A program made the position numbers and the translations under genes. Below, in pieces: positions 9,216 through 63,233 of a stretch of 64,000 bases of DNA (positions are counted from its first letter, which is position 1; every line of letters begins with the position of its first letter). Origin of the DNA: Paramoeba atlantica (taxonomy: Eukaryota > Protista > Discosea); the NCBI GenBank assembly GCA_977017575.1, contig CDRNVI010000047.1, positions 186,001 through 250,000 of the forward strand, written 5' to 3'. Below the pieces are notes generated by a model. The model saw nothing but the letters and a program-made list of their open reading frames with translations, made no database searches and had not been told where the DNA came from.

Positions 9216-10025
9216 ATGAAATGTGTTTTGGGGTCAGAATTTGGCTCGCTGCGCGGCAAAGTAAGCAATGGCATCTTACCGCCTGAAATTCAGATGCAAA
9301 GAGTGGTACAAAAATTGATTTACGCACCACGTTCGTGGACTTCATCGAAAAGCTTGTCACAATGGGAAGGAATTGGTCTTGATGAAGGCATGAATGTCAT
9401 AGCCATTGATCGAGCATCAAGTGGAATTACAGGGATTCTTTCTTGGGAATTTCTTCCTCATACAATAGAGCGCATAATACTAAGCCGAAACAAGATATCA
9501 GGGAACATAACATTCTGTGCTCTGCCGACTGTCTTGTCACTCCTTTATATTAATGAAAATATGTTCCAAGGAACAATAAGTTGCCAAGATTTCCCAACTG
9601 CCCTGCAAGAGTTCGTAGCCTTTGAAAACACTTTCAAATCTGAAATAGTTCTTGCTCTTTTACCTCAAGGAATATCTAGACTAAATTTAGGCTACAACTC
9701 TCTTCATGGCCATTTAGACCTCACAACCTTGCCAACGAACATATTTTATCTCGCTTTGAATGACAACAAGTTTACGGGAGAACTTCATCTAGACAAGCTT
9801 CCCGACTCGTTGCATGGACTTTATTTGGGAAACAATCGATTTTATGGAAGTTTAAATTTATCACATCTTCCCGCTTCACTGAAACGATTAGATTTACACA
9901 CCAACCTGCTTTCGGGAAGTCTTCACTTGGACCATTTAAGTGATTCGATGGAATGGGTATACTTGGCAGAAAATGAATTCGAACTTGTCACACCTTCACC
10001 ACCACCATGGTTTGTCAGCCTGTAG
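9216..10025 (+). CDS. LRR family protein 1
   Basis: GKVSNGILPPE leader, W..WEGI cap and ~23-aa LPxxLxxLxLxxNxFxG repeats. Confidence 0.85.
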   Translation: MKCVLGSEFGSLRGKVSNGILPPEIQMQRVVQKLIYAPRSWTSSKSLSQWEGIGLDEGMNVIAIDRASSGITGILSWEFLPHTIERIILSRNKISGNITFCALPTVLSLLYINENMFQGTISCQDFPTALQEFVAFENTFKSEIVLALLPQGISRLNLGYNSLHGHLDLTTLPTNIFYLALNDNKFTGELHLDKLPDSLHGLYLGNNRFYGSLNLSHLPASLKRLDLHTNLLSGSLHLDHLSDSMEWVYLAENEFELVTPSPPPWFVSL

Positions 10026-10399
10026 CACTCAGTTGACAGTGCTAATAGTTTCATCCTACAGGACACATTTCGAAAGATAGTACTGACGAAGAAATATCAA
10101 AGCATATTCATACTACATACCTATGTGTTCTATGAACACTTTTTTTTGTTCATTGAACACATAGAACGCATTGAACACTTTTCGGGGAGGTACACATCCC
10201 ACGAACATGTTGATTATTTTTAATAAACCTTTTTTGTTTCGCGCATATCCAAGTGATTACACATGCCCTAGCTATGCAGTATAAGAATACCGCGGTATGA
10301 GGTTCTCTCTTAGTACGCGTGGCAGCTTTTTTTGTACTCGCCGAACGTAATGCATTTCTTATTCCAAAATATTTTATTGTTTGTTGTTGTAAAAAACTA

Positions 10400-11165
10400 G
10401 GTTGAAAGGGCCCAAAAGTGCGCATTTTTCACATTTTTTTAAACTTCACCATTTTATAAAACATTTCACTCTAAACTAACTTCTACATGTCTACAGTACA
10501 TTTGCACTTCCAGCAAGAGTCTACGTAGAGGATGCCCGCAGTGCTCCCCTCGTTTTAATTTCCCGTTCACAACCTCACCACTAAACTTTAAGCGAGCGCT
10601 GCGGGCGTTGTCTTCACTTCCAAGCGTGCCTGTGCCGCGAGTGCGTACTTGCTTTTTAAGGTGTCCATTCATGCACTCAACTGTCTGCGTATGGACTCCT
10701 GTCTCTGGATCGACCCAATGACGTCGATGATTCACGGCTCCGTGACGCAAACCATCACCTCACGCAGCACTTCCTCGCCAACCATCCATCAACGGTCCAT
10801 CAACGGTCCTAGGGCCTACTGCCAAGTCCAGCACTTCGGGATTAGTGGTCACTGCACGACGATCAGCGAGAGAGCTTACAAAGATTTCCTCGGCCTTATG
10901 ATAGCGATTGGTCTTCACGACCACATTAACCCACTGTGAACCATCGGCCCGGAGTCGACGTACACGATTATTACCGCCCCGCTTCGAAGAATAGTAAAAG
11001 CTGATGATAATCTACTAAATTTTTTCGCTGCGCATGTATCATGGTGCGGCGAATACGTATAAAGCACTCTATTTCGCTCGAAAAATGGTCACTTTTCGTC
11101 TTTTGTAAAAAACAGCGGAAAAAATATTTTATGACAAAAATGCGCACTTCTGGTCCCTTTTCTCC
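10400..11165 (-). mobile_element. Degenerate Merlin (IS1016/ISXO2-like) element
   Basis: Minus strand reads DGWRGSAA*GDGLRHGAVNHRRHWVDPETGVHTQTVE, the IS1595/Merlin C-terminal motif. Imperfect TIRs GG..AAAGGG.CC.AAGTGCGCATTTTT; AAAACTA direct repeat at 10393-99 and 11166-72. Confidence 0.8.
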
Positions 11166-11360
11166 AAAACTATTGTTTCCCTCATTTAGTCAAGCATTAC
11201 TGTGATTTCCATGGGGAACCACCCTAATCTATTTCCTTGGGGAACCACCCCAATCTGCTTCCATGGCGCCGAGATGCCAAGTTTGGGGTGCCATAGGAGT
11301 AGGGTGGAAACACTTAAAACCCCCCCGCGCACATTAGTTACATCACTTATTATTGTTCGT

Positions 11361-11912
11361 TCATGCACTTATAGTGCAGGGATTATGCTCACAAAGTCCG
11401 TGCCCGCATACGACGGGTGGATCAAGTGAGGGTTCGCCCTCGCCGGAGGTGTGCGGGTGCAGAGAGCTGGAGTCCCAGGTGCAGAGAGCTCGGTTGTCAT
11501 GTGCAGGTGCAGAGAGCCGGATCCCCATATTACAGTTTCGGGGGCAATCCGGGTGCAGAGAGCTGCGACAGAGCCGAGGTGCAGAGAGCTGGGCGACCCC
11601 CAGGTGCGGAGAGCCGGGAGTCTCGTCGGCGGAGGACACGCCTAGTGGTCCTCAAGGGAGGCCACCGTGACGCATGGCCTCTTCGGAAAGGTAACTGCGA
11701 GAGAAGGGGAAGCCGAGAGAGGGAAGCACACTCACTCCAGGGGAGTGAGTCGGGAAGGGATGAAGGGGTGGAAGCGCGTCCCCTGCTTCAACAATAGAGA
11801 GGGACAGTTCCGGCCTTAGTACCGACCGGCAACGGGCATAAAAATACAGTAAGAGTATGCCCGTTGCCGGGGAAAGAAAGGATTAACTAAGGAAAAAGTA
11901 CCAACAAGGTAC
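11361..11912 (-). repeat. Spliced-leader-linked ~550-bp repeat, copy 1
   Basis: Reverse complement of 58630-59194. Starts GTACCTTGTTG|GTA, has a 14-bp-stem hairpin at 11826-11870 and tandem GTGCAGAGAGC motifs. Confidence 0.8.
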
Positions 11913-12261
11913 GTAGTTACGTATCACTTATTAGTTACATAAAACGATAAAAATCACTTATTAGTTGCGAATCACTTATCAGTTACGTGGAGTAATTAAT
12001 TCGAAAATTCTTTTTTTTGCTTGGAACTTCTTCCCTCTTGGAAATTCGTATTTTCATATTTTATTCTTCTCTTCGCCAAGTACCAATAAGGTACGTAGTT
12101 ACGTATCACTTATTAGTTACATAAAACGATAAAAATCACTTATTAGTTGCGAATCACTTATCAGTTACGTGGAGTAATTAATTCGAAAATTCTTTTTTTG
12201 CTTGGAACTTCTTCCCTCTTGGAAATTCGTATTTTCATATTTTATTCTTCTCTTCGCCAAG
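11897..12261. repeat. Near-perfect 182-bp tandem duplication
   Basis: AGTACCAA(C/T)AAGGTACGTAGTTACG...TCTTCGCCA occurs twice head-to-tail (period 182). Confidence 0.9.
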
Positions 12262-12931
12262 AGATAACAGCCTTAGCCTCTGAGTAACCCGAGGATTTGG
12301 GAACCAATAATACGAATTGAAAAGAAACTACCTTTGCACACCCACACGTAACCCACACCACACCCACAACCAAAGGGGGGCTGATCACCCCCCCTTTTTA
12401 TACCCCCCTTTTAAGATTCACGACCGCACGCCTGACCGTTCAACAGCAATGATTCGCTCTCGCGGGGACGGAGCGGAAGGTTCCTCAGCTTGCTCTTAGG
12501 CGTCCATAGCCCTTGGTTGGCCAAACGGACGTAATACTAACTAACTAACACCCACAACCATGCGAATTATACGAATTGAAAGTGACGACGAAACAATATT
12601 CGAAATGATCGATGAATCACCAAACGAGTGCTGAAGAGAAACTGCAAAATTCATAAATGAAGCGGAATTCTGCAAAGAGAGAGAAACCTGGACCCAAACT
12701 AAAACAGATGTCCAGAATTGTGATATTTATATTGCTAAATGCTGATTACCGTTTAAATTGCACATTTAAAGCAAGAGCGGATGGACAAGGTATCGTTAAA
12801 ACTTCTTCTGTGAAAACTTTTACTCGTAACTAATAAAGTTGGAATTCGACGCTTTGAAAAATCACTTACTAGTTACATATCACCTATTAGTTTCCAAAAT
12901 CCTATGTAACTAATGTGCGCGGGGGGGTTTA

Positions 12932-13190
12932 GTTATTCTGGGCTCTGACTCGTCTATCACAAGCATGTCCTACATAGACACGCTGAAAAAGGTACCTTTC
13001 CCCCAGAATTTTATTTTTCAACAAGATGGGGCTACGGCACACACCGCCCATACCTCTAAGGAGTATATTACAAATAGAACGAAAGATGTATTGAAAAATT
13101 GCCCCCCCCCAATTCACCAGACCTTTCCCCCATAGAAAACGTCTGGTCTATGTTCCAAACAGGGGTCCGAATAACTTTATATATGTAGTT
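12932..13190 (+). pseudogene. Tc1 DD35E transposase C-terminal fragment
   Basis: Reads YIDTLKK..IFQQDGATAHTAHTSKEYI..VLKN.PPNSPDLSPIENVW with frameshifts; homologous to the 2156-2896 ORF. Confidence 0.8.
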
Positions 13191-13194
13191 TATA

Positions 13195-13945
13195 CACTGT
13201 CGTTCAGCTATAAGTACCCCCCCTTTATTTTTCGGTCGCTCGTCCGTTTGACCTAATTCCAGCGGCAAACGAGAGATCTCGATCCCTAGCCTATCTTTGC
13301 CGGTCTTCTTTTTTTGTAAGAACTTAATATACGCTTTTGGCACTCGAAATACTGTTCAAAAATGAGATTTTCCAATGTACAGTCAAATTTTCCCTTTTTT
13401 TCTCATTGACACTACCCTTTTTATACCCATGGTGAGGAACCACAGGCCGAGTTACCTAAACTCGGAGTGTACGACGCTGGCAATGCGCATTTCGTTTGTT
13501 TTTGAACGAAAACGCGGTGCTTCCACCACTTCCATCTATAAAAAATATAAAATTAATAAAAAAACGGTACGAAAATGGGTAAAAATGTACGATGGAAAAA
13601 AAATGTGTCCAGAGTATTTAAAAAGTATGAACAAGGTGTTGGAGAACGGGGGATGGCATATTGGATATTAAGCTTGTCTTTGTGTAATCTTCTATTCCTG
13701 CAGTGATTGTATTTATTGGGTTTTACCCGGTAAATATATCAAAAAATGGATCATTTTTGTAAAAAAATCATTTGTTCGGCTCTTTTTTTCAAAAAATAAT
13801 TCGATCCTAATGTGTCGAGAAAAACCAGTTTAAACAGCGGGAAACGCACCTATGTAAAATTCTCTACACGTTCAAAAAAAAGATGATAAAAAACAGACCT
13901 TTTTTTCAATTTTCGAGGGGGGGGACTTATATCTGATTGCTAGTG
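13195..13945 (+). mobile_element. Internally deleted Tc1-like element
   Basis: TA-flanked imperfect TIRs CACT..C..TCAG.TATAAGT(A)CCCCCC; HTH-like remnant (IYKKYKINKKTVRKWVKMY) in 13375-13671. Confidence 0.65.
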
Positions 13946-13947
13946 TA

Positions 13948-14876
13948 CACTCCCGCCAAAAAGTATTGTCCACAAAAATGGCCGACACAAAAAGTATTGT
14001 ATTTATTAGTATCGACCATTTTTTTGAGTTTTGACCAGAATTTTAGTTTTTTTCTCGAACTTTCCATAAATTTACATAATGAGTTCTGATATACGCGGCC
14101 ACTGAAGGCTCTGTAAAATGACTATGTGTCTCGTCTGTTCGCCCGTAATTCTATTGATACTGCTGTCAAAAAGGCGACCGCCGTGTCGAAGCGTATTTGT
14201 CGTGAAAACAAGGTACTTTTTATTATCCAGGCAATGAATGAACTCCGTGCGCGTCAAGTAACTGCATCTTGGGATGTGACGGAAATTCCTCGTGTCCTCT
14301 TTGGAGAAATTTGTACTCGCACTACGCGATTGGGTTCCTTCAAATCTCTGCTAGAGTCCTCTGATGCAAGCGAGATTGTTGTTACCGTATCTGAAAGCGA
14401 AGAAGAAAACAATTCCCCAAACCTCAATGAAGGAACCTCAGTTGAAAAGAAACGCGGAAGGCCGCGGAAGCTTTCTGCGCAGGAAATTGAGGCACGCAGG
14501 GAAGCCATCGAAAAATCAGAAGCCCGCCGTAAAGAGACACTTGGAATGTCGCGGAAGGCTAAGGCAAGATTTGAACAGGTTTGGAATATGGTTCCTCTCT
14601 CGCACTACTTTAGCGTTGAGTAGTCAAAATAATTGAATTACTAATTCCATGGTGCTATTTTCATTGTGCTAATTTGTGCTATTTCCATGGTGCTAATTTC
14701 CATTCGACCTGTTTTTGTGCTTCACTATACGTTTACAAGGATCCCATATGATAAAGTCCAACTTTTTGGAAGCCAGTAGCAACTCGTGGAAATCGACAAA
14801 AAATATTGTATTTATTAGTATCGACCAAATATTCGTGGTCGATACTAATAAATTACAATACTTTTTGGCGGGGGTG
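13948..14876 (+). mobile_element. TA-flanked TIR element with a passenger ORF (14126-14623)
   Basis: 22-bp TIR CAC(T/C)CCCGCCAAAAAGTATTGT (21/22), inner repeats GTATTGTATTTATTAGTATCGACCA and a 165-codon frame with RGRPRK. Confidence 0.8.
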
Positions 14877-14933
14877 TATATACTAGACAAAGAATTATTA
14901 TAAAAGAATTTAAATACTAGAAAAAGAAATATA

Positions 14934-16429: not shown

Positions 16430-16451
16430 TATACTAGAAAAAATAAATATA

Positions 16452-16764
16452 AACCACTGTCCGGGTTAATATTCCTGGTAGGAATATTAAGAGGGTATAG
16501 GAATATTAAGAGGTATAGGAATATTAAAAAAATAGCAGAAAAGGTTTTTGGCTCATTAGGGACTGTGTGCGCGTTGGGCTTACTATTTTGATGAAAAAAT
16601 CATCAAAAAAAGGGAATATTGAAGGATGATTTTTGTGGATCTCGGGCAAAGACAGGGTAGGTGTCGGGGAGAGGGGGGGTAGGAATATTAAGCACCATTG
16701 GGACACTTAATATTCCTGGTAGGAATAATACAAGGGTATAGGAATATTAACCCGAACAGTGGTT
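16452..16764. mobile_element. MITE, AACC termini
   Basis: TIR AACCACTGT(C/T)CGGGTTAATATTCCT, TA flanks, internal AGGAATATTAA repeats. Confidence 0.85.
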
Positions 16765-23549: not shown

Positions 23550-25250
23550 ATGTCTTGTATATTACAAGCTCGTGATGATCAGCCGCCTCCTACAAAGCGT
23601 CGGAAGCAGCACATAGACACCCCAAGCAGCAGTGATGTTCAGCGTCAATCGGGCCATCCTGGAAAGATACGTGGTACCATTCTCCCCCAAGAATATGAAC
23701 TGGAAAGACTTGTTGCCGAAATATTGAACAAGCATTCATCCTGGACGGTAGCCACACTTTCGTGTAAGTGGGAAGGGGTGGCTTGCAATGGGCAAGGAGA
23801 AGTGACGGAACTAACTTTTGACGCTGAATTAGAACTTGGCTTCAACGGAGAATTTACAGGTCCATTGCATTTAGAGTATCTTCCCAGAACCGTTTTACGA
23901 GTATCTGCCTCGGCAAACTGCTTTTCTGGGTCCGATATTTCAAGCAATTTGCCTCCTGACCTCAAGCAACTTGATCTTGGCTACAATGAATTTTCTGGTA
24001 CTATAAACTTTTCTCACTTTCCATCAACGTTGAGCGTTATTATTCTGGACAGCAACCACTTTGAAGGCGGCGTAGATTTGGGTAGCCTTCCAGCGGATCT
24101 AAACATATTGAAAATAAGCGGAAATTCTTTTTCAGGCGAAATTAATTTGTGTGATTTGCCGAAACGTTTAATAGATTTAGATATAAGTTCCAACGAGTTC
24201 ACAGGCTGTACAGTTCTTCATTCGCCGAGAATTCCGCATATGATCTATTCAACCGACGATCAGTCCGAGCTCGGCTTGGACCTTCGTTCACTTCCGGGTC
24301 ACATGGAAGTATTTGATGCCTCGTGCAACAAATTTTCGGGGAAATTACTCCTCAACAATTTGCCAAGCACTCTTGAACGTCTTTTAGTTCAGGAGAACTC
24401 CCTCACAGGGACATTAGATCTGAAGTATTTATATGTGGCAGACGGACTGGAGGACGTTAATTTTTCAGACAATCGATTTAATGGACCTCTCACACTCAAT
24501 ACACTTCCTGAAGGTCTTGAATCATTTAGAGCGACGAATAACACGTTTACAGGAGGTTTGAGTCTAGACCATTTGCCCGCTGGACTGTACGACTTGGATG
24601 TCAGCGAAAATGCATTTACCGGAGCGTGAATTTTGAGGCATTTACCAGATTATATTGGAGAGATCAATCTATACTGCAACAATTTCACAGGAGACGTCGA
24701 TCTTCGTTATCTTCCTGGTGCACTCACGCGTCTCATATTGGGTGACAATAATTTATCTGGCTCATTGGATCTCGGTGAGGTACCCGGCGAATTAAATGCG
24801 CTCGATATTAGCAAAAATAAGTTTTCTGGTTCGCTAAATTTGGGAAAAATAACAACGTCGGAGATACGGCATTTACGAATAAAACACAATAATTTTGAAG
24901 GGAATCTTGACCTCAGTGCGTTGCCGAAAGATTGCATCGAATTCGACGCCAGCCATAATGAATTTTCGGGGGATATCCTGTTAGAAGGTATACCGGCAAC
25001 GCTTCACAGTCTAGACCTGAGTCATAATCACTTTACTGGTGTTCCTGATCTTTCAGACATACCCGACTGTATATCCGACCGTCTTTGCAAGATTATGGCA
25101 AACGATAACTGTTTAGAGGGAAACATCCAGCTGAATTTGCAATCTACTCCTGGTTTGGTTGTCTCGTTAAGCAATAATCCGGGGCTGCACGGGACCGCGA
25201 AGGGAAGGCAACTTAGCATTGAACAAACTCATATCGTAAGGTTTGAATGA
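23550..25250 (+). pseudogene. LRR family protein 2 (long; in-frame TGA at 24627-29)
   Basis: GKIRGTILPQEYELERLV leader and CKWEGVAC cap. The LRRs continue in the same frame after the stop (FTGA*ILRHLP). Confidence 0.8.
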
Positions 25251-33243: not shown

Positions 33244-33915
33244 ATGGATGTTCATTTCTCTCGAATGGGTAAAACACGTCACGTGAGTTTCTCACCCGAA
33301 TTTTCTCTCTCGCGGCTCGTACAACCATTACAGAACACGCCTCGCAGTTGGGTCTCCAATATTGATGTTTGCAAATGGCGGGGTGTGGATTGCGAAGGAG
33401 GTCATGTCCTCCATCTCTCATGGGCAAACCTAGGACTGCGTGGGGAGTTTAATCTACGTTTTCTTCCGTCAACTATATTGAGTTTTGATGTTTCGTCGAA
33501 TCAGCTCCAAGGTTCTTTTAAGGCGGAAGATGTGCCTACTAGTGTTACCAAAATTTGGTATTCAAAAAATCAACTACAAGATTGTGTCCATCTGCCATTT
33601 TTACATTCGGGTATGGTAAAGCTTTCGCTTGTTTCTAACCGTCTGTACGGTACGTTAAATTTGTTTGAACTTCCGACTGCACTCGAAGTGCTTCTCCTTT
33701 CAAAGAACAAATTTTCTGGTGTCGTCAATCTTACTTCCCTTCCGCATGGTTTGAGGAGCCTGTATCTTAATGAGAATCAATTGCATGGAGCGCTGGATGT
33801 TCGAACTCTTCCCCCTTCAATCAGAGTTATCAATGTCGCCGGAAATCGGTTCTCGGAATTTCTTCCTGAGTTGTCACCAGCTTGCGTGGTACGAGGCGAG
33901 CAGTATCAGAACTAA
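33244..33915 (+). CDS. LRR family protein 3
   Basis: GKTRHVSFSPEFSLSRLV leader, CKWRGVDC cap and LRRs. Confidence 0.85.
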   Translation: MDVHFSRMGKTRHVSFSPEFSLSRLVQPLQNTPRSWVSNIDVCKWRGVDCEGGHVLHLSWANLGLRGEFNLRFLPSTILSFDVSSNQLQGSFKAEDVPTSVTKIWYSKNQLQDCVHLPFLHSGMVKLSLVSNRLYGTLNLFELPTALEVLLLSKNKFSGVVNLTSLPHGLRSLYLNENQLHGALDVRTLPPSIRVINVAGNRFSEFLPELSPACVVRGEQYQN

Positions 33916-36312: not shown

Positions 36313-36978
36313 ATGTACGATGTTGCAATGGATCGTATTACGTTGTGTGTTAGTGTCCTTTACCGCGTGACGAAATCGTTACCCGTGTCCTATCATCCCG
36401 ACTTTAAGTTTTCCGACTCAACGGGTGAGCGCCGAAAAGCTGCAAGAGTAAGAGGTGTGCTACTACCCCAAGAGTATGATCTTGAGCGTTTGGTGAGTAA
36501 CATAGTGAATCCACTGCCCTCTTGGAATGCATCCGTACCTGCGCATAAGTGGGAAGGGATTACGTGTTCTGACGAAGGAGAGATTTTAAGGTTTGAAATT
36601 GAACGAAGAAGTTTGTGTGGTATAATTTTGTGGAATGCATTACCAAGGTCTCTACATCGATTCTCAGTATACACTAACCAACTTACGGGGGAAATTGATC
36701 TCGTTGATCTTCCGCCACTTATGTCTTCTCTTGATGCGTCGTACAATCAATTTACGGGAAGTGTTGATCTTTCTCATCTTCCTTCAAGCTTAACTTCCTT
36801 GATATTGTCGGTGAATATGCTAAGTGGTGATGTAACGTTCGGTGATCTTCCTTCTGGACTTATCAGCTTGTCACTTCGCAACAACGCCCAACTTACGGGG
36901 ACATTACATGTACGCATGCTACCGGTAAGCCTGACGTACAAGGCCTTTCAAGAGACCAAAATTCAAATGGTGAGCTGA
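36313..36978 (+). CDS. LRR family protein 4
   Basis: ARVRGVLLPQEYDLERLV leader, WEGITC cap; close paralogue of 59727-60371. Confidence 0.85.
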   Translation: MYDVAMDRITLCVSVLYRVTKSLPVSYHPDFKFSDSTGERRKAARVRGVLLPQEYDLERLVSNIVNPLPSWNASVPAHKWEGITCSDEGEILRFEIERRSLCGIILWNALPRSLHRFSVYTNQLTGEIDLVDLPPLMSSLDASYNQFTGSVDLSHLPSSLTSLILSVNMLSGDVTFGDLPSGLISLSLRNNAQLTGTLHVRMLPVSLTYKAFQETKIQMVS

Positions 36979-47615: not shown

Positions 47616-48461
47616 ATGTACGTTCCCCCTCACCGTCGCGAGGAGCCTTCCTACGCCCCCAGTATATCCGATCCCTATCACCCTTCGGCCCTACCATCCC
47701 GTGGATACTCCAGCAGAGGCAACCCAGAATGGCGCGGGTCCCACCGAGGAGCTGGCATGCGCCCACCTGCCCACTCTCGTCGTGTGTTCCATGACGGCAG
47801 TCACACCTATGGGGGTCGCGATCGGCGCGCCCAGGAAGACGAGGCCGAAGTCTTGGAACTGTTTCGGACCACAGGAGTGTCCCAAGGAATTAACTTTCAA
47901 CAGTACGCTGCTATTCCTGTCCATACGACCCCTCCCGACGTCGAGCCCCCGATGGAGAACTTCGATGATGTGTCCTTTCCTCCCACCTTACGGGAGAACA
48001 TCCAGCGTTGTGCGTACCAAACTCCCACCCCAGTACAGCAATACACCATTCCGCTCGCTCTCGCAGGCCACGACGTGATGGCCTGTGCACAAACCGGGAG
48101 TGGAAAAACCGCCGCGTTTTTGCTACCCACCATCACGGCGTTGCTTCGTTCCCGTTCCGAGGGGGACACGCCTGCCCCCGTCCCATCCCCCCCCACCCCC
48201 TCCTCCGAGGTCCACGTTGTGCGACCCCACTGCGTCATCCTCGCCCCCACACGGGAGCTTGTCATCCAAATCCACATGGAGGCCCGCAAGTTCTGCTTCC
48301 GCACCCCCCTCCAGGTCGCCGTCGCCTACGGCGGCACCGACATCCACAACCAGCTCCGTTCCCTCCGCCGCGGCTCCGACCTCCTCGTCGCCGCCCCCGG
48401 CCGCCTGCTCGACTACCACCACCGCGCCTCCCTCGCCCTCGACGCCGTCCGTTTCCTCATC

Positions 48462-48497
<36 letters not shown>

Positions 48498-49511
48498 GAG
48501 CCCCAGATGCGCGCCCTCGTGGTGCACTCCGACATGCCCCTCCCGGAGCAGCGCCGCACGCTGATGTTCAGCGCCACCTTCCCGCGTGAGATCCAGGACC
48601 TCGCGAGACGCCTCCTGCGCCCCGCCTTCGTCCGCCTCACCGTCGGGCGCCTCGGTGCCACCACCGCGAGCATCGCCCAGCACCTGCTCGAGCTCGAGCC
48701 CCCGCAGAAGCTGGACCGCCTGTGTGAGGCCCTGCGGGGGGGGGTCTCGGCGTCGGAGCGCGCGCTGGTGTTCATCCAGCGCAAGAGGCACGTCGAGGGG
48801 GTGCGACGGGGGCTGCAGAGCCGGGGGCTGCCCGCGGTGAGTATTCACGGGGATAAGGGCCAGAGCGAGCGGGAGAGGGCGCTGGGGGCGTTTCGCTCCG
48901 GGGCCGTCCCGGTGTTGCTGGCGACGGATGTCGCGAGTCGGGGGTTGGATATCCCGCATGTGGGGCTGGTGGTGCAGTATGACCTCCCCAACACGATTGA
49001 GGACTATGTGCACCGAATTGGGCGTACCGGTCGTGTGGGGAATCAGGGCACGGCGTTGGGGTTTTTTACCCCAACGCAGGATGCGTCGCTGGCGGGGGAA
49101 CTCGCCACGGTGTTGCGTGAGGCGCAGCAAGAGGTGCCGCCGTTCCTGGCACGTCTCGTGGAGGCGAAGGCCGCGAGTCGGCGGTACGGTCGCCGGGGGA
49201 GTGGGGGAAGTAGGGGGGGTGGCTCTCCCACCGGGGAGGGATACGGTGCTTTTCCCCAGTCCCCACACCCGGGGCGGTATTACGGGGGAAAACCCTATGC
49301 TCCCCCGGTCTATGCCACGGGTACGCCAGGGTACGCTCCGAGTGGGGTATACTATGGCCCAGGGACTACCCGGGGCCCCGCATCGGGGTATGCGGAGCGT
49401 GCTGGGGAGTATGGCTACCGGGCCTACCCGCATGAAGCGAATCCAGCGCCCGGGTCTACCGCAGCGATGTACAGTGCCCAACCGTATTACCAATTTCCTT
49501 CACAGAACTAG
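47616..49511 (+). CDS. DEAD-box RNA helicase, DED1/DDX3-like
   Basis: Q motif, MACAQTGSGKTAAF, PTREL, DEADRMLDMGFEPQ, SAT and HRIGRTGRVG motifs; RG- and YG-rich tails. Confidence 0.9.
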
Positions 49512-49956: not shown

Positions 49957-50747
49957 ATGCTGCAACTCCCGTGTCCCTTATGTTGTTTCTATGTTTGTGA
50001 TTCGGAAGAGTGTCATGTTTCCTCGCCCCATGTTACGTCACCTCCACATCTGAAAACCGGCGCACGTGGAGCCAAAGTGCGTGGTGCTGTTCTTTCTGCA
50101 GAAATTGAGCTCACTCGTTTCATATCGAATATTACGAATACTCATGTCTCTTGGAGTGAGAACATTGACGGATGCACATGGAACGGTGTCAAATGCGATA
50201 GTGATTTGCGAGTGACAACACTGGACTGGAATTCTCTTGCTTTGGTTGGAACTTTCTTGTACCGCCATATGCCGTCTACAACAAAGTCTTTCGTCGCCTG
50301 GGGTATTACGGGGGAAATACCGCTGCAAGAGCTTCCGCCCGGTATTGATATAGAGATCAACCTCTCGACGAACTAAATGCTCGGTCCCCTTTTTCTGGAG
50401 ATGCTGTCTCGAGAGCTTATCGGTTTTTACGCTGCAAAGAATCATTTAAATGGGAAACTGGATCTCACTTTGCTTCCTAGTACACTGACTTCTCTCGTAC
50501 TTCCGTTAGATAAGTTTACAGGGGGTGTGGACTTGCGTTCTCTTCCTGTGGGTCTTCGGTATCTTCAGCTCAACAGCAATCAGCTTAGTGGTGATCTTTA
50601 TCTTAATTCACTACCAGATTCACTTGAAGTACTCTATATATCAATAATAATCAATTCACGGGAGTTCTTGATGAGCGTCTCCTGCCTTCCAGTCTGAAAT
50701 TTCCTTTGTTTAGTAAAAATCAATTTTCAAAGATTATCCCAAGATAA
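49957..50747 (+). pseudogene. LRR family protein 5 (TAA at 50374-76 plus a frameshift at ~50645)
   Basis: AKVRGAVLSAEIELTRFI leader and CTWNGVKC cap. LRRs continue after the stop, and the alternative frame ISNNQFTGVLD continues to 50747. Confidence 0.8.
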
Positions 50748-51010: not shown

Positions 51011-51631
51011 ATGAAATTTTCCTTGTATTGTTTTGCAGACGCTCCCCATAGCGAAAAGAACCGACGGCTTGGAAAAGTACATGCTACGACTCTTCCGTTA
51101 GAGTATGAACTTGCCCGTTTTATTGAGGAAGTCGAAAACTCGCCCCCATCATGGAGAGCAGACAATCCTGCAGATCAATGGCGAGGAGTTACGACACCTG
51201 GTGAGAACTGTGTTTCGGAACGACCCGACGAAGGTGTTTCCTTAATGTGGGGTAGTTTAAAGCTTCGAGGTTCTCTTTGCTGGAAGTTTCTGCCGTGCGG
51301 CGTCAATCAGATCTACATAAACCGCAATAAACTGACGGGAGAAATCGATTTAGGGATGTTGCCTTCAAAAATGATGTACCTCAGCGCCGCCGACAATCTT
51401 TTTTGTGGATCTCTTAACTTGACACAGCTCCCTTCAACGCTTAAATATTTATATCTCAACGAGAACAAATTTGAGGGTGAAGTGTGTTTTTCAACGCTTC
51501 CCACATCATTAGCAGTTTTGGATCTTTCAGAAAATGAAGGTCTCGTTGGCAAAGTTTCCCATCCCGAGTTACCACCGGCGTTAAAGCGTCTTGGAGTGGG
51601 AGGTACTCAAATACAATACTTAAAGGCATGA
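51011..51631 (+). CDS. LRR family protein 6
   Basis: GKVHATTLPLEYELARFI leader, WRGV cap and LRRs; first ATG at 51011. Confidence 0.8.
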   Translation: MKFSLYCFADAPHSEKNRRLGKVHATTLPLEYELARFIEEVENSPPSWRADNPADQWRGVTTPGENCVSERPDEGVSLMWGSLKLRGSLCWKFLPCGVNQIYINRNKLTGEIDLGMLPSKMMYLSAADNLFCGSLNLTQLPSTLKYLYLNENKFEGEVCFSTLPTSLAVLDLSENEGLVGKVSHPELPPALKRLGVGGTQIQYLKA

Positions 51632-55702: not shown

Positions 55703-55920
55703 TTTTAAAGACGTGGTACCAATCTGATGGCATAAATTTTCAGAAAGAGTGTAGCACGGAAGGTAGAAAATGAATGTACATACAGTGTATTTAAAACATG
55801 TATTTATGAAAAAATGTAAATTTCATGACATTTTACAGAGGCATGTTGTGGTCCGGTAAGAATAGCAATACCCGCTTTGCCCTTGTGATACCATTTATAT
55901 ACAAATTTTACATAATTTTA

Positions 55921-56664
55921 ATGTACACAACGCACGGGATTTATACCGCAGACAACTGTCCAGCATCCAAACGACGTAAACTACAACCGAGCTCGCCGGT
56001 AAAATCCAGTGGAGATCGGAATACCGGAACAGTGAAAAGAACGGGAGGAAAGACTCGGAATGTCCCCCTTCCACAAGAGTACGATCTCGCAAGATTTGTT
56101 CAAGATATTGAGGAACTTCCTTCTTCGTGGAGCACGGAAACCCCTGCGTGCGAATGGGAAGGTGTGACATGTTTCAAAAAAGTGGTTGCGCATGTCTATG
56201 CGCGACATTCACTCGAAGGCTTTCTTCAATGGGACTATTTCCCTCGTACGGTTAAGTGGGTGAACCTGTCGGACAACACATTGGAGGGAGAAATTGATTT
56301 CTGTACTCTTCCTCCCCCGCTCTATTTTTTTGATCTTCGATACAATTGCTTTTCTGGTAGAGTTGACTTAACCTCACTCCCACAAGAGATGCAAGAGTTG
56401 CACTTGTCCGACAATGAGTTTTCCGGGCCAATCGATTTGTCTCGTCTTCCGATTTCACTCGTAACGTTATCGTTAGATCAGAATGAGTTTAGTGGTGAAG
56501 TGGATTTGAGTAATATAGAGGATACTGGACTTGCAATGTTATATCTGAATGAAAATGCAGAGCTGCGAGGTGAACTTGATGCAGAAAAAATGCGGGAACG
56601 TTTCGATGATGTTATGTGGTGTGGAACGCAGATACGTGAGTTGCAAATCAATGAGGTGAACTGA
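55921..56664 (+). CDS. LRR family protein 7
   Basis: PASKRRK, GKTRNVPLPQEYDLARFV leader and CEWEGVTC cap; an upstream in-frame ATG at 55825 is an alternative start. Confidence 0.85.
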   Translation: MYTTHGIYTADNCPASKRRKLQPSSPVKSSGDRNTGTVKRTGGKTRNVPLPQEYDLARFVQDIEELPSSWSTETPACEWEGVTCFKKVVAHVYARHSLEGFLQWDYFPRTVKWVNLSDNTLEGEIDFCTLPPPLYFFDLRYNCFSGRVDLTSLPQEMQELHLSDNEFSGPIDLSRLPISLVTLSLDQNEFSGEVDLSNIEDTGLAMLYLNENAELRGELDAEKMRERFDDVMWCGTQIRELQINEVN

Positions 56665-56894
56665 TCGCATCATTAGTGGTACAGTGCACACAATTACTAG
56701 TCCCCCTCCTGTAATTTGTAAAAAAAAGAATTAGCAATTTTTTAATTAGTAAATAGGACTTCTTTTTTAATTCTTCCGATATTCTATAATTATAATTAGT
56801 AAAAGTTTTTCCTAAAAAATCAGCCTTTTTCACCGATGCCGCTATTCGGGCGTACGCAGAGTGATTGGTAAAATCAACCTTTTTCACCGATACA

Positions 56895-58640
56895 ATGGCG
56901 TAAACTACACTCTGTCGTCGTCTTAGATTTATTCTCTACTTACATTCTACGTCCTCTTTGCATCACGTGTGTAATTCTGTTCGTACTGCGGACGTTTCAG
57001 AAATACAGGTCGCTTCACGCACACGTACGGCAAGGGTGAGCGCCTCGAACCTTCCTCAAGAATATGAACTTACAGGGGTGCGAATCTAAAGGTGGGGAGG
57101 GGGTCTAAAATTCGTAAAAGTTGTCCAATTTTGGAAAATAATAGCGCATTGGATAGCTCTCACAGAGTTGTATGTTTTAGGATAGGTAGCTTCCGGGGTT
57201 TGGGGGGTACCCCCCTTTCATGTAAGGGTCAAAAATCACATATTGCAATACTTTAGTGGTGTCAATAATTTCTGTAATTTGGATTGCAAAAGACGATTAG
57301 TAACCACAGTGCCCCCCGTTCCGACTAATAACAATTTTACAACGCTTCCTGAAACTCTTCAACGTTTTCTGAACCGTTGCAGAGTGAGTCTGTTTCAATT
57401 TAAGGAAAGACCCCTCAATAGCGGCTTCCAGTTGCTGTCGATTTCGGTGTCGAAGAAGATTTTTGTCTGTGTCCATCACAGACCAGAAGACCGCTCCAGC
57501 TCTCTACGCCGTAAACAAGGTCATACCCCTCGTCGACAAGCTTAAGAGCCACATCCAGGAACGCAGGGGTAACCACCGTCGAGACACGCTCTCGGGATGC
57601 CGTTAACACGTCACCCGTAAGGGTAAAACGTTCAACCCAACGTTTTACAGTGTTCTCATGAACACCAAAGTGCTGTGCCGTAGCGGAGTACGATCCTGTG
57701 CGCTCGTATTCCGCCACCAAAAGCATGCGGTGGCTCTCTTTGACGGGGGCGGGGGAAGAATACGATCTATCGCTCAGTACTCCACGGGAAGTCCTCGAGC
57801 GAGCGCCCTTTTGGGGCATTTTCTAGTAAAAAATGTATTTTCTGCAAGGGAAAAAAGCGAAATATGGTATCAAAAAATATGTACGTTAAAATCGCAGGAT
57901 TTTAATGCGCCTAAAACATACAACTCTGTGAGAGCTACCCAATGCGCTATTATTTTCCAAAATTGGACAACTTTTACGAATTTTATACCCCCCCCCCACC
58001 TTTAAACCCGCACCCCTGTATGTTACTCATTGCCGATGTAGAAACAAAGCACCGCTCACGGAGTACGGACTTCTCGGCGTGCCAGTGGAAGGGTGTGGAA
58101 TGTAACAAATGTGGGGACATCCAAAAAATACAATGGGAGGGTATACAAGCGTCAGGCTCACTGCGTTTTGGTCATCTTTCTCGGACTCTTAAATCTTTTT
58201 TTTTTTCAAAACTCTCTTTCAGGTGAAGTGCCTCTAGATATTCTCCCGCTTAATCTTTTAACTTTTATCGTAAACTTCAACAGGTTTAGCGGGACCTTGA
58301 ATCTTACGTCTCTTCCGGTTAATTTACAATGGCTAGCTCTGAACAACAATAAATTTACCGGAGAAGTTTGTCTGACAAAGCTTCCAGATAATCTTTTCGG
58401 GCTATACCTCAGCAATAATCATTTATCGGGTCAAGTGTGTTTGACCAAACTACCAAAGACAATGAAATATATTGCCCTGGATCACAACTTATTCTCGGGA
58501 AATGTAGCTTTTGATTCTCTTTCTCCACTTTTACGATCACTACGGTTGTCGCACAACAAAGATCTATGCGGTGAAATATACCAAGAATTTTTACCAGAGC
58601 ATTTGCGTAAATTAAGTTTCTGTACAGTACAGTTTCTGTA
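56895..58640 (+). pseudogene. LRR family protein 8, interrupted by a Tc1-derived element and frameshifted
   Basis: Removing 57073-58018 and one TA restores ARVSASNLPQEYELMLLIADVE..CQWKGVEC. There is a frameshift in the T-run at ~58197-58206, and the 3' end runs into the SL-linked repeat. Confidence 0.8.
57073..58018 (-). mobile_element. Internally deleted Tc1 element of the CAGGGG/DD32E family
   Basis: ~110-bp TIRs with TA TSD. The N-terminal HTH (MLLVAEYERTG..VHENTVKRW) and C-terminal tail (SFRKRCKIVISRNGGHCGY) are homologous to 37606-38740; the catalytic core is absent. Confidence 0.85.
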
Positions 58641-59194
58641 CCTTGTTGGTACTTTTTCCTTAGTTCATCCTTTCTTTCCCCGGCAACGGGCATACTCTTA
58701 CTGTATTTTCATGCCCGTTGCCGGCCGGCACTAAGGTCGGAACTGTCCCTCTTGTCGCTGAAGCAGGGGACGCGCTTTCACCACTTCACCCCTCCCCGAC
58801 TCACTCCCCTGGAGTGAGTGTGCTTCCCCCTCTCGGCTTTTTTTCGACTTGTCTTTTTCCTCTCCGAGAGGGTCATGCGTCACGGTGGCCTCCCTTGAGG
58901 ACCACTAGACGTGTCCTCCGCCGACGAGACTCGGCTCTCTGCACCTGGCGGTCGCCCAGCTCTCCGCACCTCGGCTCTGTCGCAGCTCTCTGCACCCGGA
59001 TTGCCCCCGAAACTGTAATATGGGGATTACGCATCCGGCTCTCTGCACCTGCACATGACAACCGAGCTCTCTGCACCTGGGACGCCAGCTCTCCGCACCC
59101 GCACACCTCCGGCGAGGACGAAACCTCACATGATCCACCCGTCGTATGCGGGATAAGGACATGGTGAGCAAATCTCTGCACTATAAGTGCATGA
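58630..59194 (+). repeat. Spliced-leader-linked ~560-bp repeat, copy 2
   Basis: Begins CAGTTTCTGTACCTTGTTG|GTA (17/19 to the SL consensus CAGTTTCTGTACTTTATTG, plus the GTA donor); hairpin at 58680-58724; reverse complement of 11361-11912. Confidence 0.8.
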
Positions 59195-59726
59195 TAAAAC
59201 CTAGTAGCGGCAAAAAAGTTGTAGAAATTGAAGAGACTAAGATAATATTTAAAACTGCGTAATAATAACTCCGTTTTTTTCACCAAAACGAATTGGTTGG
59301 TGCCGTCGACTTGAAGCTACGAATTGGTTTGTAATTGCAGAACGTAACTGTAAAGCAATCAAATGTAATGGATACAACTGTAAAATATCCTTTGATCATC
59401 TAGCTTTCTCTTTGAGGGGGGCATGTTAAGTTGGACTGGTGTATTGTTTTCCCATATTTTCTCTTGATGGCAACAATGCTGGATATTTCATGTGACAAAA
59501 CATATTTTGAGGAAATGTCTAGCGAACTATACTCCCTATCCTAGCGTTGCTTTTTACTAGAATCGGATAACGCTAGGAGAGGTGAAAGTATGTGAGCTAA
59601 GAATACGAAAAGGAAAAGTAGACAGTCGCCTTTGTCTTCCGAAATCTACTTTTATTTTGATCGAAAATAGGCACTCCTGGGAATCTTATCCGCAAATGCT
59701 ATCTTCAAGTAAAATTAATCTTTAAT

Positions 59727-60371
59727 ATGTACAGTGTTATAATGGATTGTACGTCGAAATGGCCACATTTTTCTTCTCATCCTGGAAAATTTAAGTTTTC
59801 CGACTCAACGGGTGAGAATCGAAAGGCTGGAAAAGTAAGAGGTGTGCTATTACCCCAAGAGTATGATCTTGAGCGTTTGGTAAGTAACATAGTGAATCCA
59901 CTTCCCTCTTGGAATACATCTGTACCTGCGAATAAGTGGGAAGGGGTCGAATGTTCTGACGAAGGGGCAATTCTATCGTTCGAAGTGGAGAATGAAAAAC
60001 TGGTTGGCAGTTTTCGTTGGAGTACTCTTCCAAGGTCATTAACCCGATTCTCAGTGTATAAAAATAGACTTAGTGGGGAACTCGATCTCGTAGACCTTCC
60101 ACCACTTTTATTTTCTTTTGACGCGTCGTTCAATCAATTTACGGGTAGTATTGATATTTGTCATCTTCCTTCGACATTAACTTCGCTGATAGTGTCGGCG
60201 AATAACTTACGTGGTCATGTAACGTTTACCAATCTGCCTTCTGGAATGAAATACCTACCGCTCCGTAGCAACGCCAAACTTACAGGGACCCTACATGAGC
60301 ACATGCTACCGGCAGGCCTTTTGTACAAGGCCTTTCAAGAGACTGAAATTGAAATTGTATCACTAACTTAA
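59727..60371 (+). CDS. LRR family protein 9
   Basis: GKVRGVLLPQEYDLERLV leader; close paralogue of 36313-36978. Confidence 0.85.
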   Translation: MYSVIMDCTSKWPHFSSHPGKFKFSDSTGENRKAGKVRGVLLPQEYDLERLVSNIVNPLPSWNTSVPANKWEGVECSDEGAILSFEVENEKLVGSFRWSTLPRSLTRFSVYKNRLSGELDLVDLPPLLFSFDASFNQFTGSIDICHLPSTLTSLIVSANNLRGHVTFTNLPSGMKYLPLRSNAKLTGTLHEHMLPAGLLYKAFQETEIEIVSLT

Positions 60372-60487
60372 ACCCCCTTCACACTATTATTTACAACCCC
60401 GTTCTGGCTATTTTGCAGCCGTATTCTACTGATTCGTTGTCGATTTATCGCTGAAAAAATGTTGTAAATGCATCAATTAGTGTGAAT

Positions 60488-60584
60488 CCTTCGTCGTTAA
60501 ACGCGGCGGTAGTTTTCAACGCGAAGATCGCAGCATGAGTGACTTTTAAGTTGAAAACAACCACCACATTTAACGAAGAGACTA
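60488..60584 (-). repeat. Solo, diverged Rep-A 5' hairpin
   Basis: CGTTAAACGCGGCGGTAGTTTTCAAC-GCGAAG..ATGAGTGACTTTTAA-GTTGAAAACAACCACC..TTTAACGAAG. Confidence 0.75.
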
Positions 60585-60730
60585 AAATTAAAAATACACT
60601 AATTTTTACGAGCACTGCACAAGAACACATATTGAAAGAATCTTTGAAACTTCTCTCTATTGGTAAGAATTATCGCTCAGCACCTACCTCTTTCTTTTTC
60701 GTTCCTAAAACACTACCCTATATTTCAGCC

Positions 60731-62170
60731 ATGACAAGCGTGGTCCCACGCAGGGAGAAATCTGTCTCCTTCTTTTCTCCTTATGACAGCCGCAAGCTCT
60801 CCTCCTTTCCTCCTTCCACCGACTCCCTTTCGGCGGATCTCAACCTACCCTCTCACTTCGCGCCTCCCTCCCCTCGAGAGCGACCACCTCCCAGTCCCTG
60901 TAATCGACCCACATCCTTCACTTCCCCCTCCCCATATCGTACAACATCCATGCCACGCGCTACACCGCATCAGAACCTACCCCACGCCTGGAGTGGGATA
61001 TCCACTCAGAGCGGTCGACCGGACGGCACACCCCGCCGGCACGGCCCCTTACCCCACGCCACCCCCACACTCCACACAGACGTGTTCTTCCTTCACCGCT
61101 ATCTCACCCAATCCTCCGTGCCGAATCCCACCTCCTCCTCTGCCCCCTCCCCCCATTCCCACAACCCCATACCCCTCTCCCCCCGTACCACGGCCTCACG
61201 TCCTACTCTCCCCGAGCCCTCTGCCCCCCGGCCCTTCCCCGCAGCCCCATCCCTGTCCCGACCTCGTGCCCCCTCGTCGTTGTTTCCTCCTCGACCCTCG
61301 GAGTCGCGTACCACACCCTCTGCTGCTCCCTCGTTATCCTCCTCCTCCTTATTCTCTCTACCCCGTGCTCCCTCTCTCCTACGTGAGTCCTCCAGCAGCA
61401 CCTCCACATCCCAAGCCCACCTCTCTCTCCCCACACTCTCCGAGCCGCGAGTCCGAGCCCCCAGTCGTCGTCCTCTTCCACAACCCCCGCAAGACGTCTC
61501 CCCCTCCCCCACGATGGATTACAAATCCATGGGGCCGGCTCCACGAGCCACACCCAACCCCTCCGCCTCCACCGCTCGTGAGCGTGGGGCTCGAGGAGGG
61601 TCGATGGCACCGGGGCCATGGGGTTCTTCTTCTTCTTTTTTAAATTCGTCTTCTTCTTCTTCTCTCTTCCCCAATGCCCCTACCCCGTATGAACGAAACC
61701 GGCTGCCCCCTCCCTCCCTGTCACAGCCTCGTTTGACTTCCTCAGTTCAACCCGCCCCCTCGTTGTTTCCCCCTTCCGGGAAACCATTAGAGGGTTGTGG
61801 GGAAACCAACGAGCAGGCCCGTGACAGGGGGGTGAGTGCGGGGAGAAGAAGAGAGGGCACCGCCCCCGTATGGGGGTTACCAGGGGGGAGAGGGAGAGGG
61901 GAGAATGCCACGAGTCAGGGTGTCGCCTCGAAGAGGGGACAACCGTGGTATGAAAACCCCCCCTCGCAGCGAGACGGGGTTGGTCGGAGACAGGACCAGC
62001 ACGGGGGGGAGTTTGCGACCCCGGCGGAGAGGTGGGGAGAGGAAACGGAATCCGCCGTGGGGGGTAAGGGCTTGGCCACGGATTCGACGTCGTTAAAAGT
62101 GGCACGTGTGTTGGGGAGTTATGGAAAGTCTATTTTGTTGGGTTTACTTGGGATTCCGCAGAACGGGTGA
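60731..62170 (+). CDS. Hypothetical Ser/Pro-rich low-complexity protein
   Basis: Long open frame. Likely start MTSVVP at 60731 just after TTTCAG; the upstream part of the tracked ORF overlaps a repeat. No recognisable domain. Confidence 0.55.
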   Translation: MTSVVPRREKSVSFFSPYDSRKLSSFPPSTDSLSADLNLPSHFAPPSPRERPPPSPCNRPTSFTSPSPYRTTSMPRATPHQNLPHAWSGISTQSGRPDGTPRRHGPLPHATPTLHTDVFFLHRYLTQSSVPNPTSSSAPSPHSHNPIPLSPRTTASRPTLPEPSAPRPFPAAPSLSRPRAPSSLFPPRPSESRTTPSAAPSLSSSSLFSLPRAPSLLRESSSSTSTSQAHLSLPTLSEPRVRAPSRRPLPQPPQDVSPSPTMDYKSMGPAPRATPNPSASTARERGARGGSMAPGPWGSSSSFLNSSSSSSLFPNAPTPYERNRLPPPSLSQPRLTSSVQPAPSLFPPSGKPLEGCGETNEQARDRGVSAGRRREGTAPVWGLPGGRGRGENATSQGVASKRGQPWYENPPSQRDGVGRRQDQHGGEFATPAERWGEETESAVGGKGLATDSTSLKVARVLGSYGKSILLGLLGIPQNG

Positions 62171-62390
62171 GTGGTTCACAGAGTGTGTATTTTTGGTGAA
62201 TGGGTAAAACTATTGAATGTCAATAACACGAGAGGTGGGAGGGGGTTCAGACGTTGAGAAAGGGTATCGTATAATTTCAAAGTAGATCTCAGTGTGCGAG
62301 GGCGTACACTGTGCGTTTTGCGTATCTAAAACTTTAAGCTCTTTTGATAAAAATATTCCTTTTGTACTCCGTTCAAGATTGATCGCACTC

Positions 62391-63233
62391 ATGCAAACAA
62401 ACGTCATGTCTTCGACTCCTGCTTCAGATTCAACAGGAGGGACACGGTTGCGAAAGGTCCATCTAACTCTTCTACCCCCTGAAATGGAACTTGATCGTTT
62501 TCTATCACGCACAACTGGACGTCATCACAGTTGGAGCACTGAAAATGACGCTTGCAAATTGTGGGATGGCGTGAAATGTGAGGATCAAAAAGTTGTAGAG
62601 CTTAGCTGGACTTCTTTTGGACTATCCGGTAGTGTGGAGTGGAGGTTTCTTCCTCGCACTGTGCGACACGTCGATCTTGGACGCTTATATGACGTGTCCA
62701 ACAAACTGACAGGACGCATTCAGACCTGTGATCTCCCTGATTCTCTAGAGTGCCTTATCGTTGATCGAAACAGTTTTTGTGGTGAACTCGAAACTCAGAC
62801 ATTCCCGTCGGCGATGCGGAATTTTGAAGCCCGTGAAAATTGTCTCGAAGGCAGTGTAGATCTGACGGCACTTCCTTGCGGTCAGTCAACGCTTGACTTG
62901 AACAACAATGATTTAAGTGGTCGCATTTTCTTGGACTCGTTGCCACCTCAGCTTCGCTACCTGTACCTGTCCCATAATAGATTGAGCGGTGAGGTAAACT
63001 TAACCACGCTACCAGAGATGCTTCTGGAACTTACGGCAACCGGTAATCTACTTATTGGAGATCTGGATCTCTCACGTTTGCCCCAGAGCTTAAGGTTGTT
63101 ACATCTCAGTGGAAACAAATTTGATGGGACGCTAAATTGCCGGAATCTACCCGAAAAAGCCCAGATATATGTAAGAACAATGAATATTCGATCCTCCGAG
63201 CCTGACCCCTTACCACCACGAGTAAACGTATGA
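62391..63233 (+). CDS. LRR family protein 10
   Basis: RKVHLTLLPPEMELDRFL leader, WDGVKC cap and LRRs. Confidence 0.85.
   Translation: MQTNVMSSTPASDSTGGTRLRKVHLTLLPPEMELDRFLSRTTGRHHSWSTENDACKLWDGVKCEDQKVVELSWTSFGLSGSVEWRFLPRTVRHVDLGRLYDVSNKLTGRIQTCDLPDSLECLIVDRNSFCGELETQTFPSAMRNFEARENCLEGSVDLTALPCGQSTLDLNNNDLSGRIFLDSLPPQLRYLYLSHNRLSGEVNLTTLPEMLLELTATGNLLIGDLDLSRLPQSLRLLHLSGNKFDGTLNCRNLPEKAQIYVRTMNIRSSEPDPLPPRVNV

Follow-up and report, generated by a model that had tools for sequence, protein, structure and literature searches.

What is the conserved N-terminal motif shared by ten leucine-rich-repeat (LRR) genes that lie dispersed over 64,000 nucleotides of a contig assembled from Paramoeba atlantica (CDRNVI010000047.1, positions 186,001 to 250,000; hereafter the window)? 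An earlier note on this DNA, which comes from a protist with a spliced leader, took the motif for a leader that could direct export, by analogy with the RxLR and PEXEL signals of parasites. In this work, we combine profile searches, predicted structures and substitution counts for these genes (c1 to c10; all positions are window coordinates) and their homologues. The ten genes probably belong to a lineage-specific, massively expanded family of small LRR proteins whose leader is mostly a cap helix and not an export signal, and whose members would act as soluble intracellular binders.

The leader motif and the LRRNT_2-type cap

The earlier note's ten LRR copies are all found in the window, all on the + strand, with 23-residue repeats and a plant-type W..C.W.GV.C cap that has lost both cysteines in two copies. 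The shared motif stands only in a looser form: the literal pattern first proposed fits four of the ten copies (c2, c6, c7 and c9), whereas a relaxed one (G to A or R, L to F or M, E or D to S or Q) fits all ten and has no match in 50 block-shuffled windows. In nine copies, the motif lies in an open frame.

Pfam LRRNT_2 (PF08263, gathering cut-off 20.7 bits) recognizes the cap in c3 (21.5 bits), c5 (22.1 bits) and c7 (23.9 bits, or 26.9 for its N-terminal piece), matches c2 and c10 below threshold and was not detected in c1, c4, c6 and c9. These matches span profile positions 11 or 19 to 41 only, which is the S-W...C-x-W-x-G-V-x-C half. Searching the PDB with phmmer returned plant LRR receptor ectodomains (E ~1e-16), and an hhalign comparison of 24 leader-plus-cap sequences with 12 plant LRRNT_2 sequences gave a probability of 98% and an E value of 1.9e-13. 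There, family columns 15-63 lie on plant columns 10-63 and columns 1-14 stay unaligned, with Y-D-L-A-R-F-V-Q-D-I falling on the plant x-A-L-L-x-F-K-x-x-I helix.

Structural models point the same way. The AlphaFold2 model of c7, built from the Met 33 start with a mean predicted local distance difference test (pLDDT) score of 82.8, has a helix at residues 52-59 (Q-E-Y-D-L-A-R-F) and a pLDDT of about 95 from residue 51, compared to about 69 in the G-K-T-R-N-V-P block, and residues 1-40 are disordered. Its top Foldseek matches are the ectodomains of SERK, BIR, SOBIR1, PRK and SRF6 (E ~1e-7). When aligned on small plant ectodomains (the same five and LRX) with VIA-align, it reaches Z scores of 19-20 over a range that starts at residues 48-52 of the model and, on the plant side, at the first cap residues that are resolved. 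The AlphaFold model of a Perkinsela homologue (P0016) has its helix at residues 26-33 and pLDDT blocks of 37, 54, 89 and 89, with high values from Tyr 21, and its structural alignments start at residues 19-25 and reach a Z score of 25, PGIP included.

Together, hhalign, the two models and the structural alignments (Z 19-25) place an N-cap helix, S-W and C-x-W-x-G-V-x-C on the first repeat, and show L-P-x-E-Y-x-L-x-R-[LF]-[IV] as the predicted cap helix with its N-terminal turn. As the motif from L-P-x-E onward corresponds to this helix, two thirds of the so-called leader are the ordinary first helix of a cap. The structure prediction that the earlier note had called for thus assigns the helix part to the cap (pLDDT ~90-95) and leaves a flank of 7-9 residues outside the plant cap. 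The proposed RxLR- or PEXEL-like export signal is not supported by the column-for-column alignment with plant LRRNT_2, and two further results speak against it: the distance between motif and N-terminus is not fixed (6-102 residues, median 28 in 88 representatives) and no dN/dS (ratio of nonsynonymous to synonymous substitution rates) exceeds 1. RxLR and PEXEL motifs depend on a signal peptide, on a constant spacing and on disordered surroundings, which sets the leader apart from both.

Each protein reads as a short, variable and mostly hydrophilic tail, a basic flank, an LRRNT_2-type cap that runs from the helix to S-W...C-x-W-x-G-V-x-C, and 4 to about 17 repeats of 23 residues, adding up to proteins of some 200-570 residues made of LRRs only. 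The cap helix shields the hydrophobic core of the first repeat, as in plant LRR ectodomains.

Other identities for this region were tried and rejected. The L-S-Q-x-A-L-M-E-M-L-I of the Perkinsela proteins resembles the start of an F-box, but no Pfam F-box match came up at E ≤ 10 in six N-terminal pieces, and in structure the proteins match plant caps rather than Skp2-like proteins, so that they do not group with the F-box-LRR proteins. PEXEL or RxLR spacing is absent from the motif, whose distance to the N-terminus varies as given above.

The flank before the cap helix, R-x-[GAS]-[KR]-[VI]-[RS]-G-x-x, is private to the family. In a logo of the 88 representatives, numbered from the L of L-P as position 0, its conserved positions are R at -9 (0.60), G/A/S at -7 (0.93), K/R at -6 (0.95), V/I at -5 (0.92), R/S at -4 (0.88) and G at -3 (0.62). 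Those of the helix are L at 0 (0.88), P at +1 (0.94), E at +3 (0.98), Y at +4 (0.86) and L at +6 (0.99), followed in the rest of the cap by W at +20 (0.99), C at +27 (0.92), W at +29 (0.99) and C at +34 (0.99). The flank may dock the tail onto the cap or serve as a short motif for binding or processing; it is probably not a host-targeting leader like RxLR or PEXEL.

The size of the family emerges from an exhaustive search in which the 63-column leader-plus-cap profile was run against 1.84 billion representatives, a check also suggested in the earlier note, which gave 2417 matches at E ≤ 1e-3 and 573 at E ≤ 1e-10 and recovered a large family of short proteins. About 87 of the best 150 matches are such short proteins, representatives at most 50% identical that match the whole leader, and 63 are giant multi-cap proteins that match in the cap half only, many times over. 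Ten matches that we checked (six short, four long) all come from ENA only, nine as singletons and one with two members, and word and profile searches located paralogues with the same leader in the same ENA assembly (ERZ24900291), where the family counts at least about 90 diverged members that carry it. The giants P0123, P0124 and P0127, from ENA contigs, have 1600-2900 residues in 9-20 units, each unit with its own cap and a few LRRs; their cap helix is of the A-A-L-x-A-L-Y-x-A-T-x-G type, followed by W-x-G-V.

A second subfamily, with the leader G-R-L-D-Y-x-S-L-S-Q-x-A-L-M-E-M-L-I, occurs in Perkinsela sp. CCAP 1560/4 and in another ENA sample, and MAFFT aligns this leader residue for residue with G-K-V-R-G-x-x-L-P-Q-E-Y-x-L-E-R-L-V. 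Against the family profile, Perkinsela P0016 has an E value of 1.3e-56, and P0008 matches c7 alone with 1.1e-8. In the ESM Atlas, c7 lies beside clusters of 61, 433, 75 and 88 small LRR proteins that carry the labels Euglenozoa or Discosea. The mS29 protein encoded in the window is 61% identical to that of Prokinetoplastina sp. PhF-6, 57% to that of PhM-4, 60-62% to those of two ENA relatives and about 51% to those of trypanosomatids; these identities give an approximate placement. The organism would be a kinetoplastid that has Perkinsela and the free-living Prokinetoplastina among its relatives.

N-termini, selection and competing readings

We judged N-terminal hydrophobicity by hydropathy on gene models with predicted starts. 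By this measure, a secretory signal peptide is not a general feature of the family: among the 88 representatives, a hydrophobic N-terminal stretch is absent from 56, short in 23 and at least 12 residues long in nine. The earlier note's statement that no copy has an obvious signal peptide or transmembrane segment holds for nine of the ten copies and fails for c7 if translation starts at ATG 55825, which yields a hydrophobic stretch of 17 residues, the only one of 12 or more and the only transmembrane-like segment among the window copies. The P-x-x-K-R-R-K motifs that it likened to nuclear localization signals (NLSs) are present in both c2 and c7; by pattern, such candidate NLSs (K-R-R-K-like) also occur in P0003 and in 14-15 of the 88 representatives. 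The proteins would be soluble intracellular binding modules, of which some may enter the nucleus through K-R-R-K.

A recurrent feature marks the N-termini of c5, c6, c7 and many paralogues (for example at 51011-51046): a Met, 6-18 hydrophobic and often Cys-containing residues, and a small residue followed by Asp, as in F-A-D-A-P, Y-T-A-D or A-A-D-V, continued in a subset by P-P-x-K-R-R-K. In other paralogues, the Met immediately precedes the Asp. The feature may be a degenerate signal or an acylation site, or it may stem from a gene call that runs too far into pyrimidine-rich upstream DNA. We consider a trans-splice acceptor read as protein less likely; for c2, c6 and c7, no in-frame start before the leader would remain.

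Selection was estimated by Nei-Gojobori counting on four sequences (c4, c9 and two paralogues downstream of the window), a small and crude sample in which most pairs have an overall dN/dS of 0.22-0.34 and the youngest pair 0.74. By site class, dN/dS is 0.12 at repeat scaffold positions, 0.21 in the cap helix and 0.47 at the concave x positions, and for the seven flank codons it comes to 0.97, a value based on very few changes. The positive selection that the earlier note had proposed to look for is therefore not seen, with no class above 1 among these four sequences. In this family, copies would be duplicated and lost while purifying selection prevails overall, and the concave face of the repeats would be less tightly constrained.

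Several observations weigh against soluble intracellular proteins with a purely structural leader. The flank core [GAS]-[KR]-[VI]-[RS]-G matches the cap core in conservation (K/R 95%, V/I 92%), and a structural explanation leaves it uncovered because AlphaFold puts it at the edge of the fold only. In about one third of the gene models, a short hydrophobic N-terminus precedes the small-residue-Asp site, and c7 gains its long stretch if read from the first ATG; the assigned start codons and trans-splice sites are predictions only, and the sole possible RNA run is merely guessed to be RNA. From this run (X5), one contig is identical to c7 at 56079-56526 and another is paralogue-like, and we drew no conclusion from them. 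The cysteine pair of the plant-type cap forms a disulfide in plant ectodomains, and its retention here (for example c7 56146-56169) in 92% and 99% of the 88 members is odd for cytosolic proteins. Episodic positive selection, too, would be compatible with a counting test on four sequences.

The first of these points raises the question of whether the basic flank, with or without the tail, is a sorting or processing signal (for nuclear import together with K-R-R-K, for a protease or for unconventional export) in a delivered repertoire, which we consider unlikely. It is 88-95% conserved per position over 88 members that otherwise share at most about 50% identity, it is kept as G-R-L in the Perkinsela-type subfamily and its poor order in AlphaFold (pLDDT ~55-70) is what a linear motif would be expected to have; K-R-R-K-like motifs in 14-15 members and the life of the related Perkinsela inside an amoeba (PMC5601477) fit as well. 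However, the flank runs straight into the cap helix at a variable distance (6-102 residues) from the N-terminus, has neither R-x-L-x-E/Q/D nor R-x-L-R spacing and in most members lacks the upstream signal peptide that both RxLR and PEXEL need, and the closest named relatives of this organism by mS29 identity are free-living. It is quite unlikely, for its part, that the family or a subset is secreted or displayed at the surface through short atypical hydrophobic N-termini ending in small-residue-Asp, with a plant-like disulfide. Such a route would account for the conserved cysteines, the hydrophobic stretch in 32 of 88 gene models (at least 12 residues in nine), the A-A-D, T-A-D and F-A-D sites that recur behind it, the 17-residue segment of c7 and the signal-like segment with which a TARA homologue (P0006) begins. 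Yet the cysteine pair is kept equally in members without a hydrophobic N-terminus (51 of 56, compared to 30 of 32 others; neither cysteine is left in c1, in c6 or in the Perkinsela-type subfamily), several members have an NLS-like K-R-R-K right behind the Asp site, a misfit for entry into the endoplasmic reticulum, most stretches have just 6-10 residues and some may be gene calls over-extended into pyrimidine-rich DNA, and the Perkinsela members are negative in SignalP and TargetP (published tables, PMC5601477).

To the idea that the copies are decaying or selfish passengers, spread with the surrounding transposons and without cellular function, we assign a nearly negligible probability. The GC content at third codon positions (GC3) of the LRR genes (0.36-0.45) does equal that of the transposons and lies far below that of conserved core genes (0.61-0.75), and three of the ten copies are broken; against this stand seven intact reading frames, dN/dS of 0.2-0.3 with 0.12 at scaffold positions and the expression of many Perkinsela members (PMC5601477, Supplementary Note 1.4). 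Moreover, c4 and c9 (71% amino acid and 79% nucleotide identity) resemble each other over the coding sequence only, with no shared mobile flanks seen, and no other LRR pair can be aligned at the DNA level in a self-BLAST of the window, for which reasons we also rejected the LRR genes as transposon cargo. A more speculative thought joins the flank and the cysteines: kept from this organism to Perkinsela, the flank might be what an unconventional export route recognizes in disulfide-bonded LRR binders that have no signal peptide. We hold this to be very unlikely; if it were true and the organism endosymbiotic like Perkinsela, the binders would end up in the cytoplasm of the host and the repertoire would carry a new kind of leader, fused to the cap. 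Soluble intracellular binders with a cap helix as most of their leader remain the reading that we prefer.

The LRR genes of the window and their turnover

The genes lie amid Tc1/mariner, hAT and MULE-like transposons (Table 1). They had been described as sitting singly, but c5 and c6 adjoin each other, as do c7, c8 and c9. Four more leader-bearing copies follow within 15 kb past the window end on the public contig L005, which starts at window position 63510, so that the cluster comprises at least 14 copies in about 80 kb.

Table 1. LRR copies and associated elements at the locus (aa, amino acids)
Feature	Position	Strand	Leader	Remarks
c1	9216-10025	+	9255-9302	intact, 269 aa; without both cap cysteines
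c2	23550-25250	+	23661-23708	~17 repeats; in-frame TGA 24627-24629; NLS-like P-P-T-K-R-R-K upstream
c3	33244-33915	+	33268-33315	intact, 223 aa; leader just 8 residues after first Met
c4	36313-36978	+	36442-36489	intact, 221 aa; close paralogue of c9
c5	49957-50709	+	50071-50118	in-frame TAA 50374-50376, then ~110 more in-frame LRR residues
c6	51011-51631	+	51071-51118	intact from first ATG, 206 aa; without both cap cysteines
c7	55825 (or 55921)-56664	+	56047-56094	intact; ATGs 55825, 55843, 55921; NLS-like P-A-S-K-R-R-K
c8	57030-58613	+	57030-57071 (piece)	broken; cap and LRRs resume at 58016
Tc1/mariner-like non-autonomous insert in c8	57074-58015	undefined		942 bp; short inverted ends, TA flanks
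Spliced-leader-headed short interspersed nuclear element (SINE) truncating c8	58614-59194	+		reverse copy 11361-11912, 90% identity
c9	59727-60371	+	59829-59876	intact, 214 aa
c10	62391-63233	+	62451-62498	intact from first ATG, 280 aa
Further LRR copies	L005:5717, 10055, 11087, 14618			interleaved with 6PF2K, TruD and a reverse-transcriptase open reading frame

The repeats have a period of 23 residues, to which 36 of 46 N-x-x-x-G spacings conform exactly, and the consensus L-x-x-L-x-L-x-x-N-x-F-x-G-x-I-D-L-x-x-L-P-x-x. They do not match the 24-residue plant-specific repeat L-x-x-L-x-L-x-x-N-x-L-S-G-x-I-P-x-x-L-G-x-L-x-x, as they are one residue shorter and end in D-L-x-x-L-P-x-x, and are a variant of the plant-specific LRR class.

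In the subfamily of c4 and c9, the 13 residues before the leader (F-K-F-S-D-S-T-G-E-x-R-K-A) are conserved as well (36403-36489 compared to 59790-59876, and paralogues on L005), and the synonymous rate is lower over the 5' part (0.17-0.46) than over the repeats (0.66-0.80), which could reflect gene conversion or constraint at the nucleotide level. Along the window, GC3 is sharply split, for example between 47616-49511 and 59727-60371: the DEAD-box helicase, RNA polymerase subunit, FHA-PPIase and mS29 genes have values of 0.61-0.75, and the LRR genes, transposons, WD40 and CKS values of 0.36-0.49.

Three of the ten copies are pseudogenes, as first noted: c2, c5 and c8, which we left as broken frames with their pieces unjoined. 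In c2 and c5, a single in-frame stop is followed by LRRs in the same frame; we rejected a reassigned stop codon because the standard code leaves the long conserved genes of the window open. Three lesions affect c8: the 942-bp insert separates the leader piece A-R-V-S-A-S-N-L-P-Q-E-Y-E-L from the remainder of the cap, the frame changes at a T11 run (58195-58206), and the SINE truncates the gene. The insert is missing from contigs of two further runs of this organism, in which 57073 is joined to 58016 with 17 other letters at the joint, so the Tc1/mariner-like insert is polymorphic and young. The SINE cuts c8 after an L-x-x-L codon group, and it also interrupts P0020, a paralogue located elsewhere in the assembly. 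In run X2, a contig joins 58206 to 59407 with eight other letters between them, a 1.2-kb deletion variant that lacks the rest of c8 and the SINE and whose left edge is the T11 run where the c8 frame changes. Broken copies, a polymorphic transposon insertion, transposon neighbours and further copies past the window bear out the dispersed multigene repertoire with turnover that the earlier note had described.

Relation to known systems

The Perkinsela genome has 462 predicted leucine-rich proteins and hundreds more by tBLASTn (Tanifuji et al. 2017; PMC5601477, Supplementary Note 1.4), many with RNA-seq support, unrelated to bodonins and of a significance called unclear; one member that begins with the G-R-L-D-Y leader is tabulated there as cytosolic, with all targeting predictors negative (PMC5601477). 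A survey of Bodo saltans lists two neighbouring small LRR open reading frames of 948 and 483 bp, with plant receptor kinases as best matches and no signal peptide or transmembrane segment listed (Jackson et al. 2008, Table 2; PMC2621209). On the motif or on LRRNT-type caps in kinetoplastids, we found nothing in the literature beyond this table and the Perkinsela supplement.

The family is among the largest in Perkinsela-type kinetoplastids. Identifying most of the leader as a cap helix removes an attractive but wrong analogy to parasite export signals, and narrows the question to two oddities: a conserved flank of 7-9 residues outside the core of the fold, and a plant-type cysteine pair in proteins that mostly lack a signal.

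Compared with known systems, the closest likeness is to the Perkinsela leucine-rich proteins, which are also small, made of LRRs only with a 23-residue repeat, present in hundreds of copies and without predicted targeting signals, and share the succession of flank, helix and W-x-G-V. Their leader differs in lying about 15 residues from the Met and in the loss of S-W and both cap cysteines, and neither motif nor cap is described in the Perkinsela paper. The Bodo saltans reading frames, likened here by their published description only, are similarly plant-like, small and neighbouring. With the RxLR proteins of oomycetes and the PEXEL proteins of Plasmodium, the window family has in common a short conserved N-terminal motif in a large gene family with fast turnover, but in those proteins the motif stands at a roughly constant distance behind a signal peptide, in a disordered context and with R-x-L-R or R-x-L-x-E/Q/D spacing. 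Plant LRRNT_2 ectodomains (SERK/BAK1, BIR, SOBIR1, PRK, SRF6, PGIP and LRX) share the fold from the first residue of the cap (Z 19-25), with its helix, S-W and C-x-W-x-G-V-x-C, and their small members such as SERK are of similar size. Unlike them, the window family has repeats of 23 instead of 24 residues, ending in L-P-x-x instead of I-P-x-x-L-G, mostly has no signal peptide, is without a C-terminal cysteine cap, transmembrane segment or kinase, and adds a basic flank before the helix.

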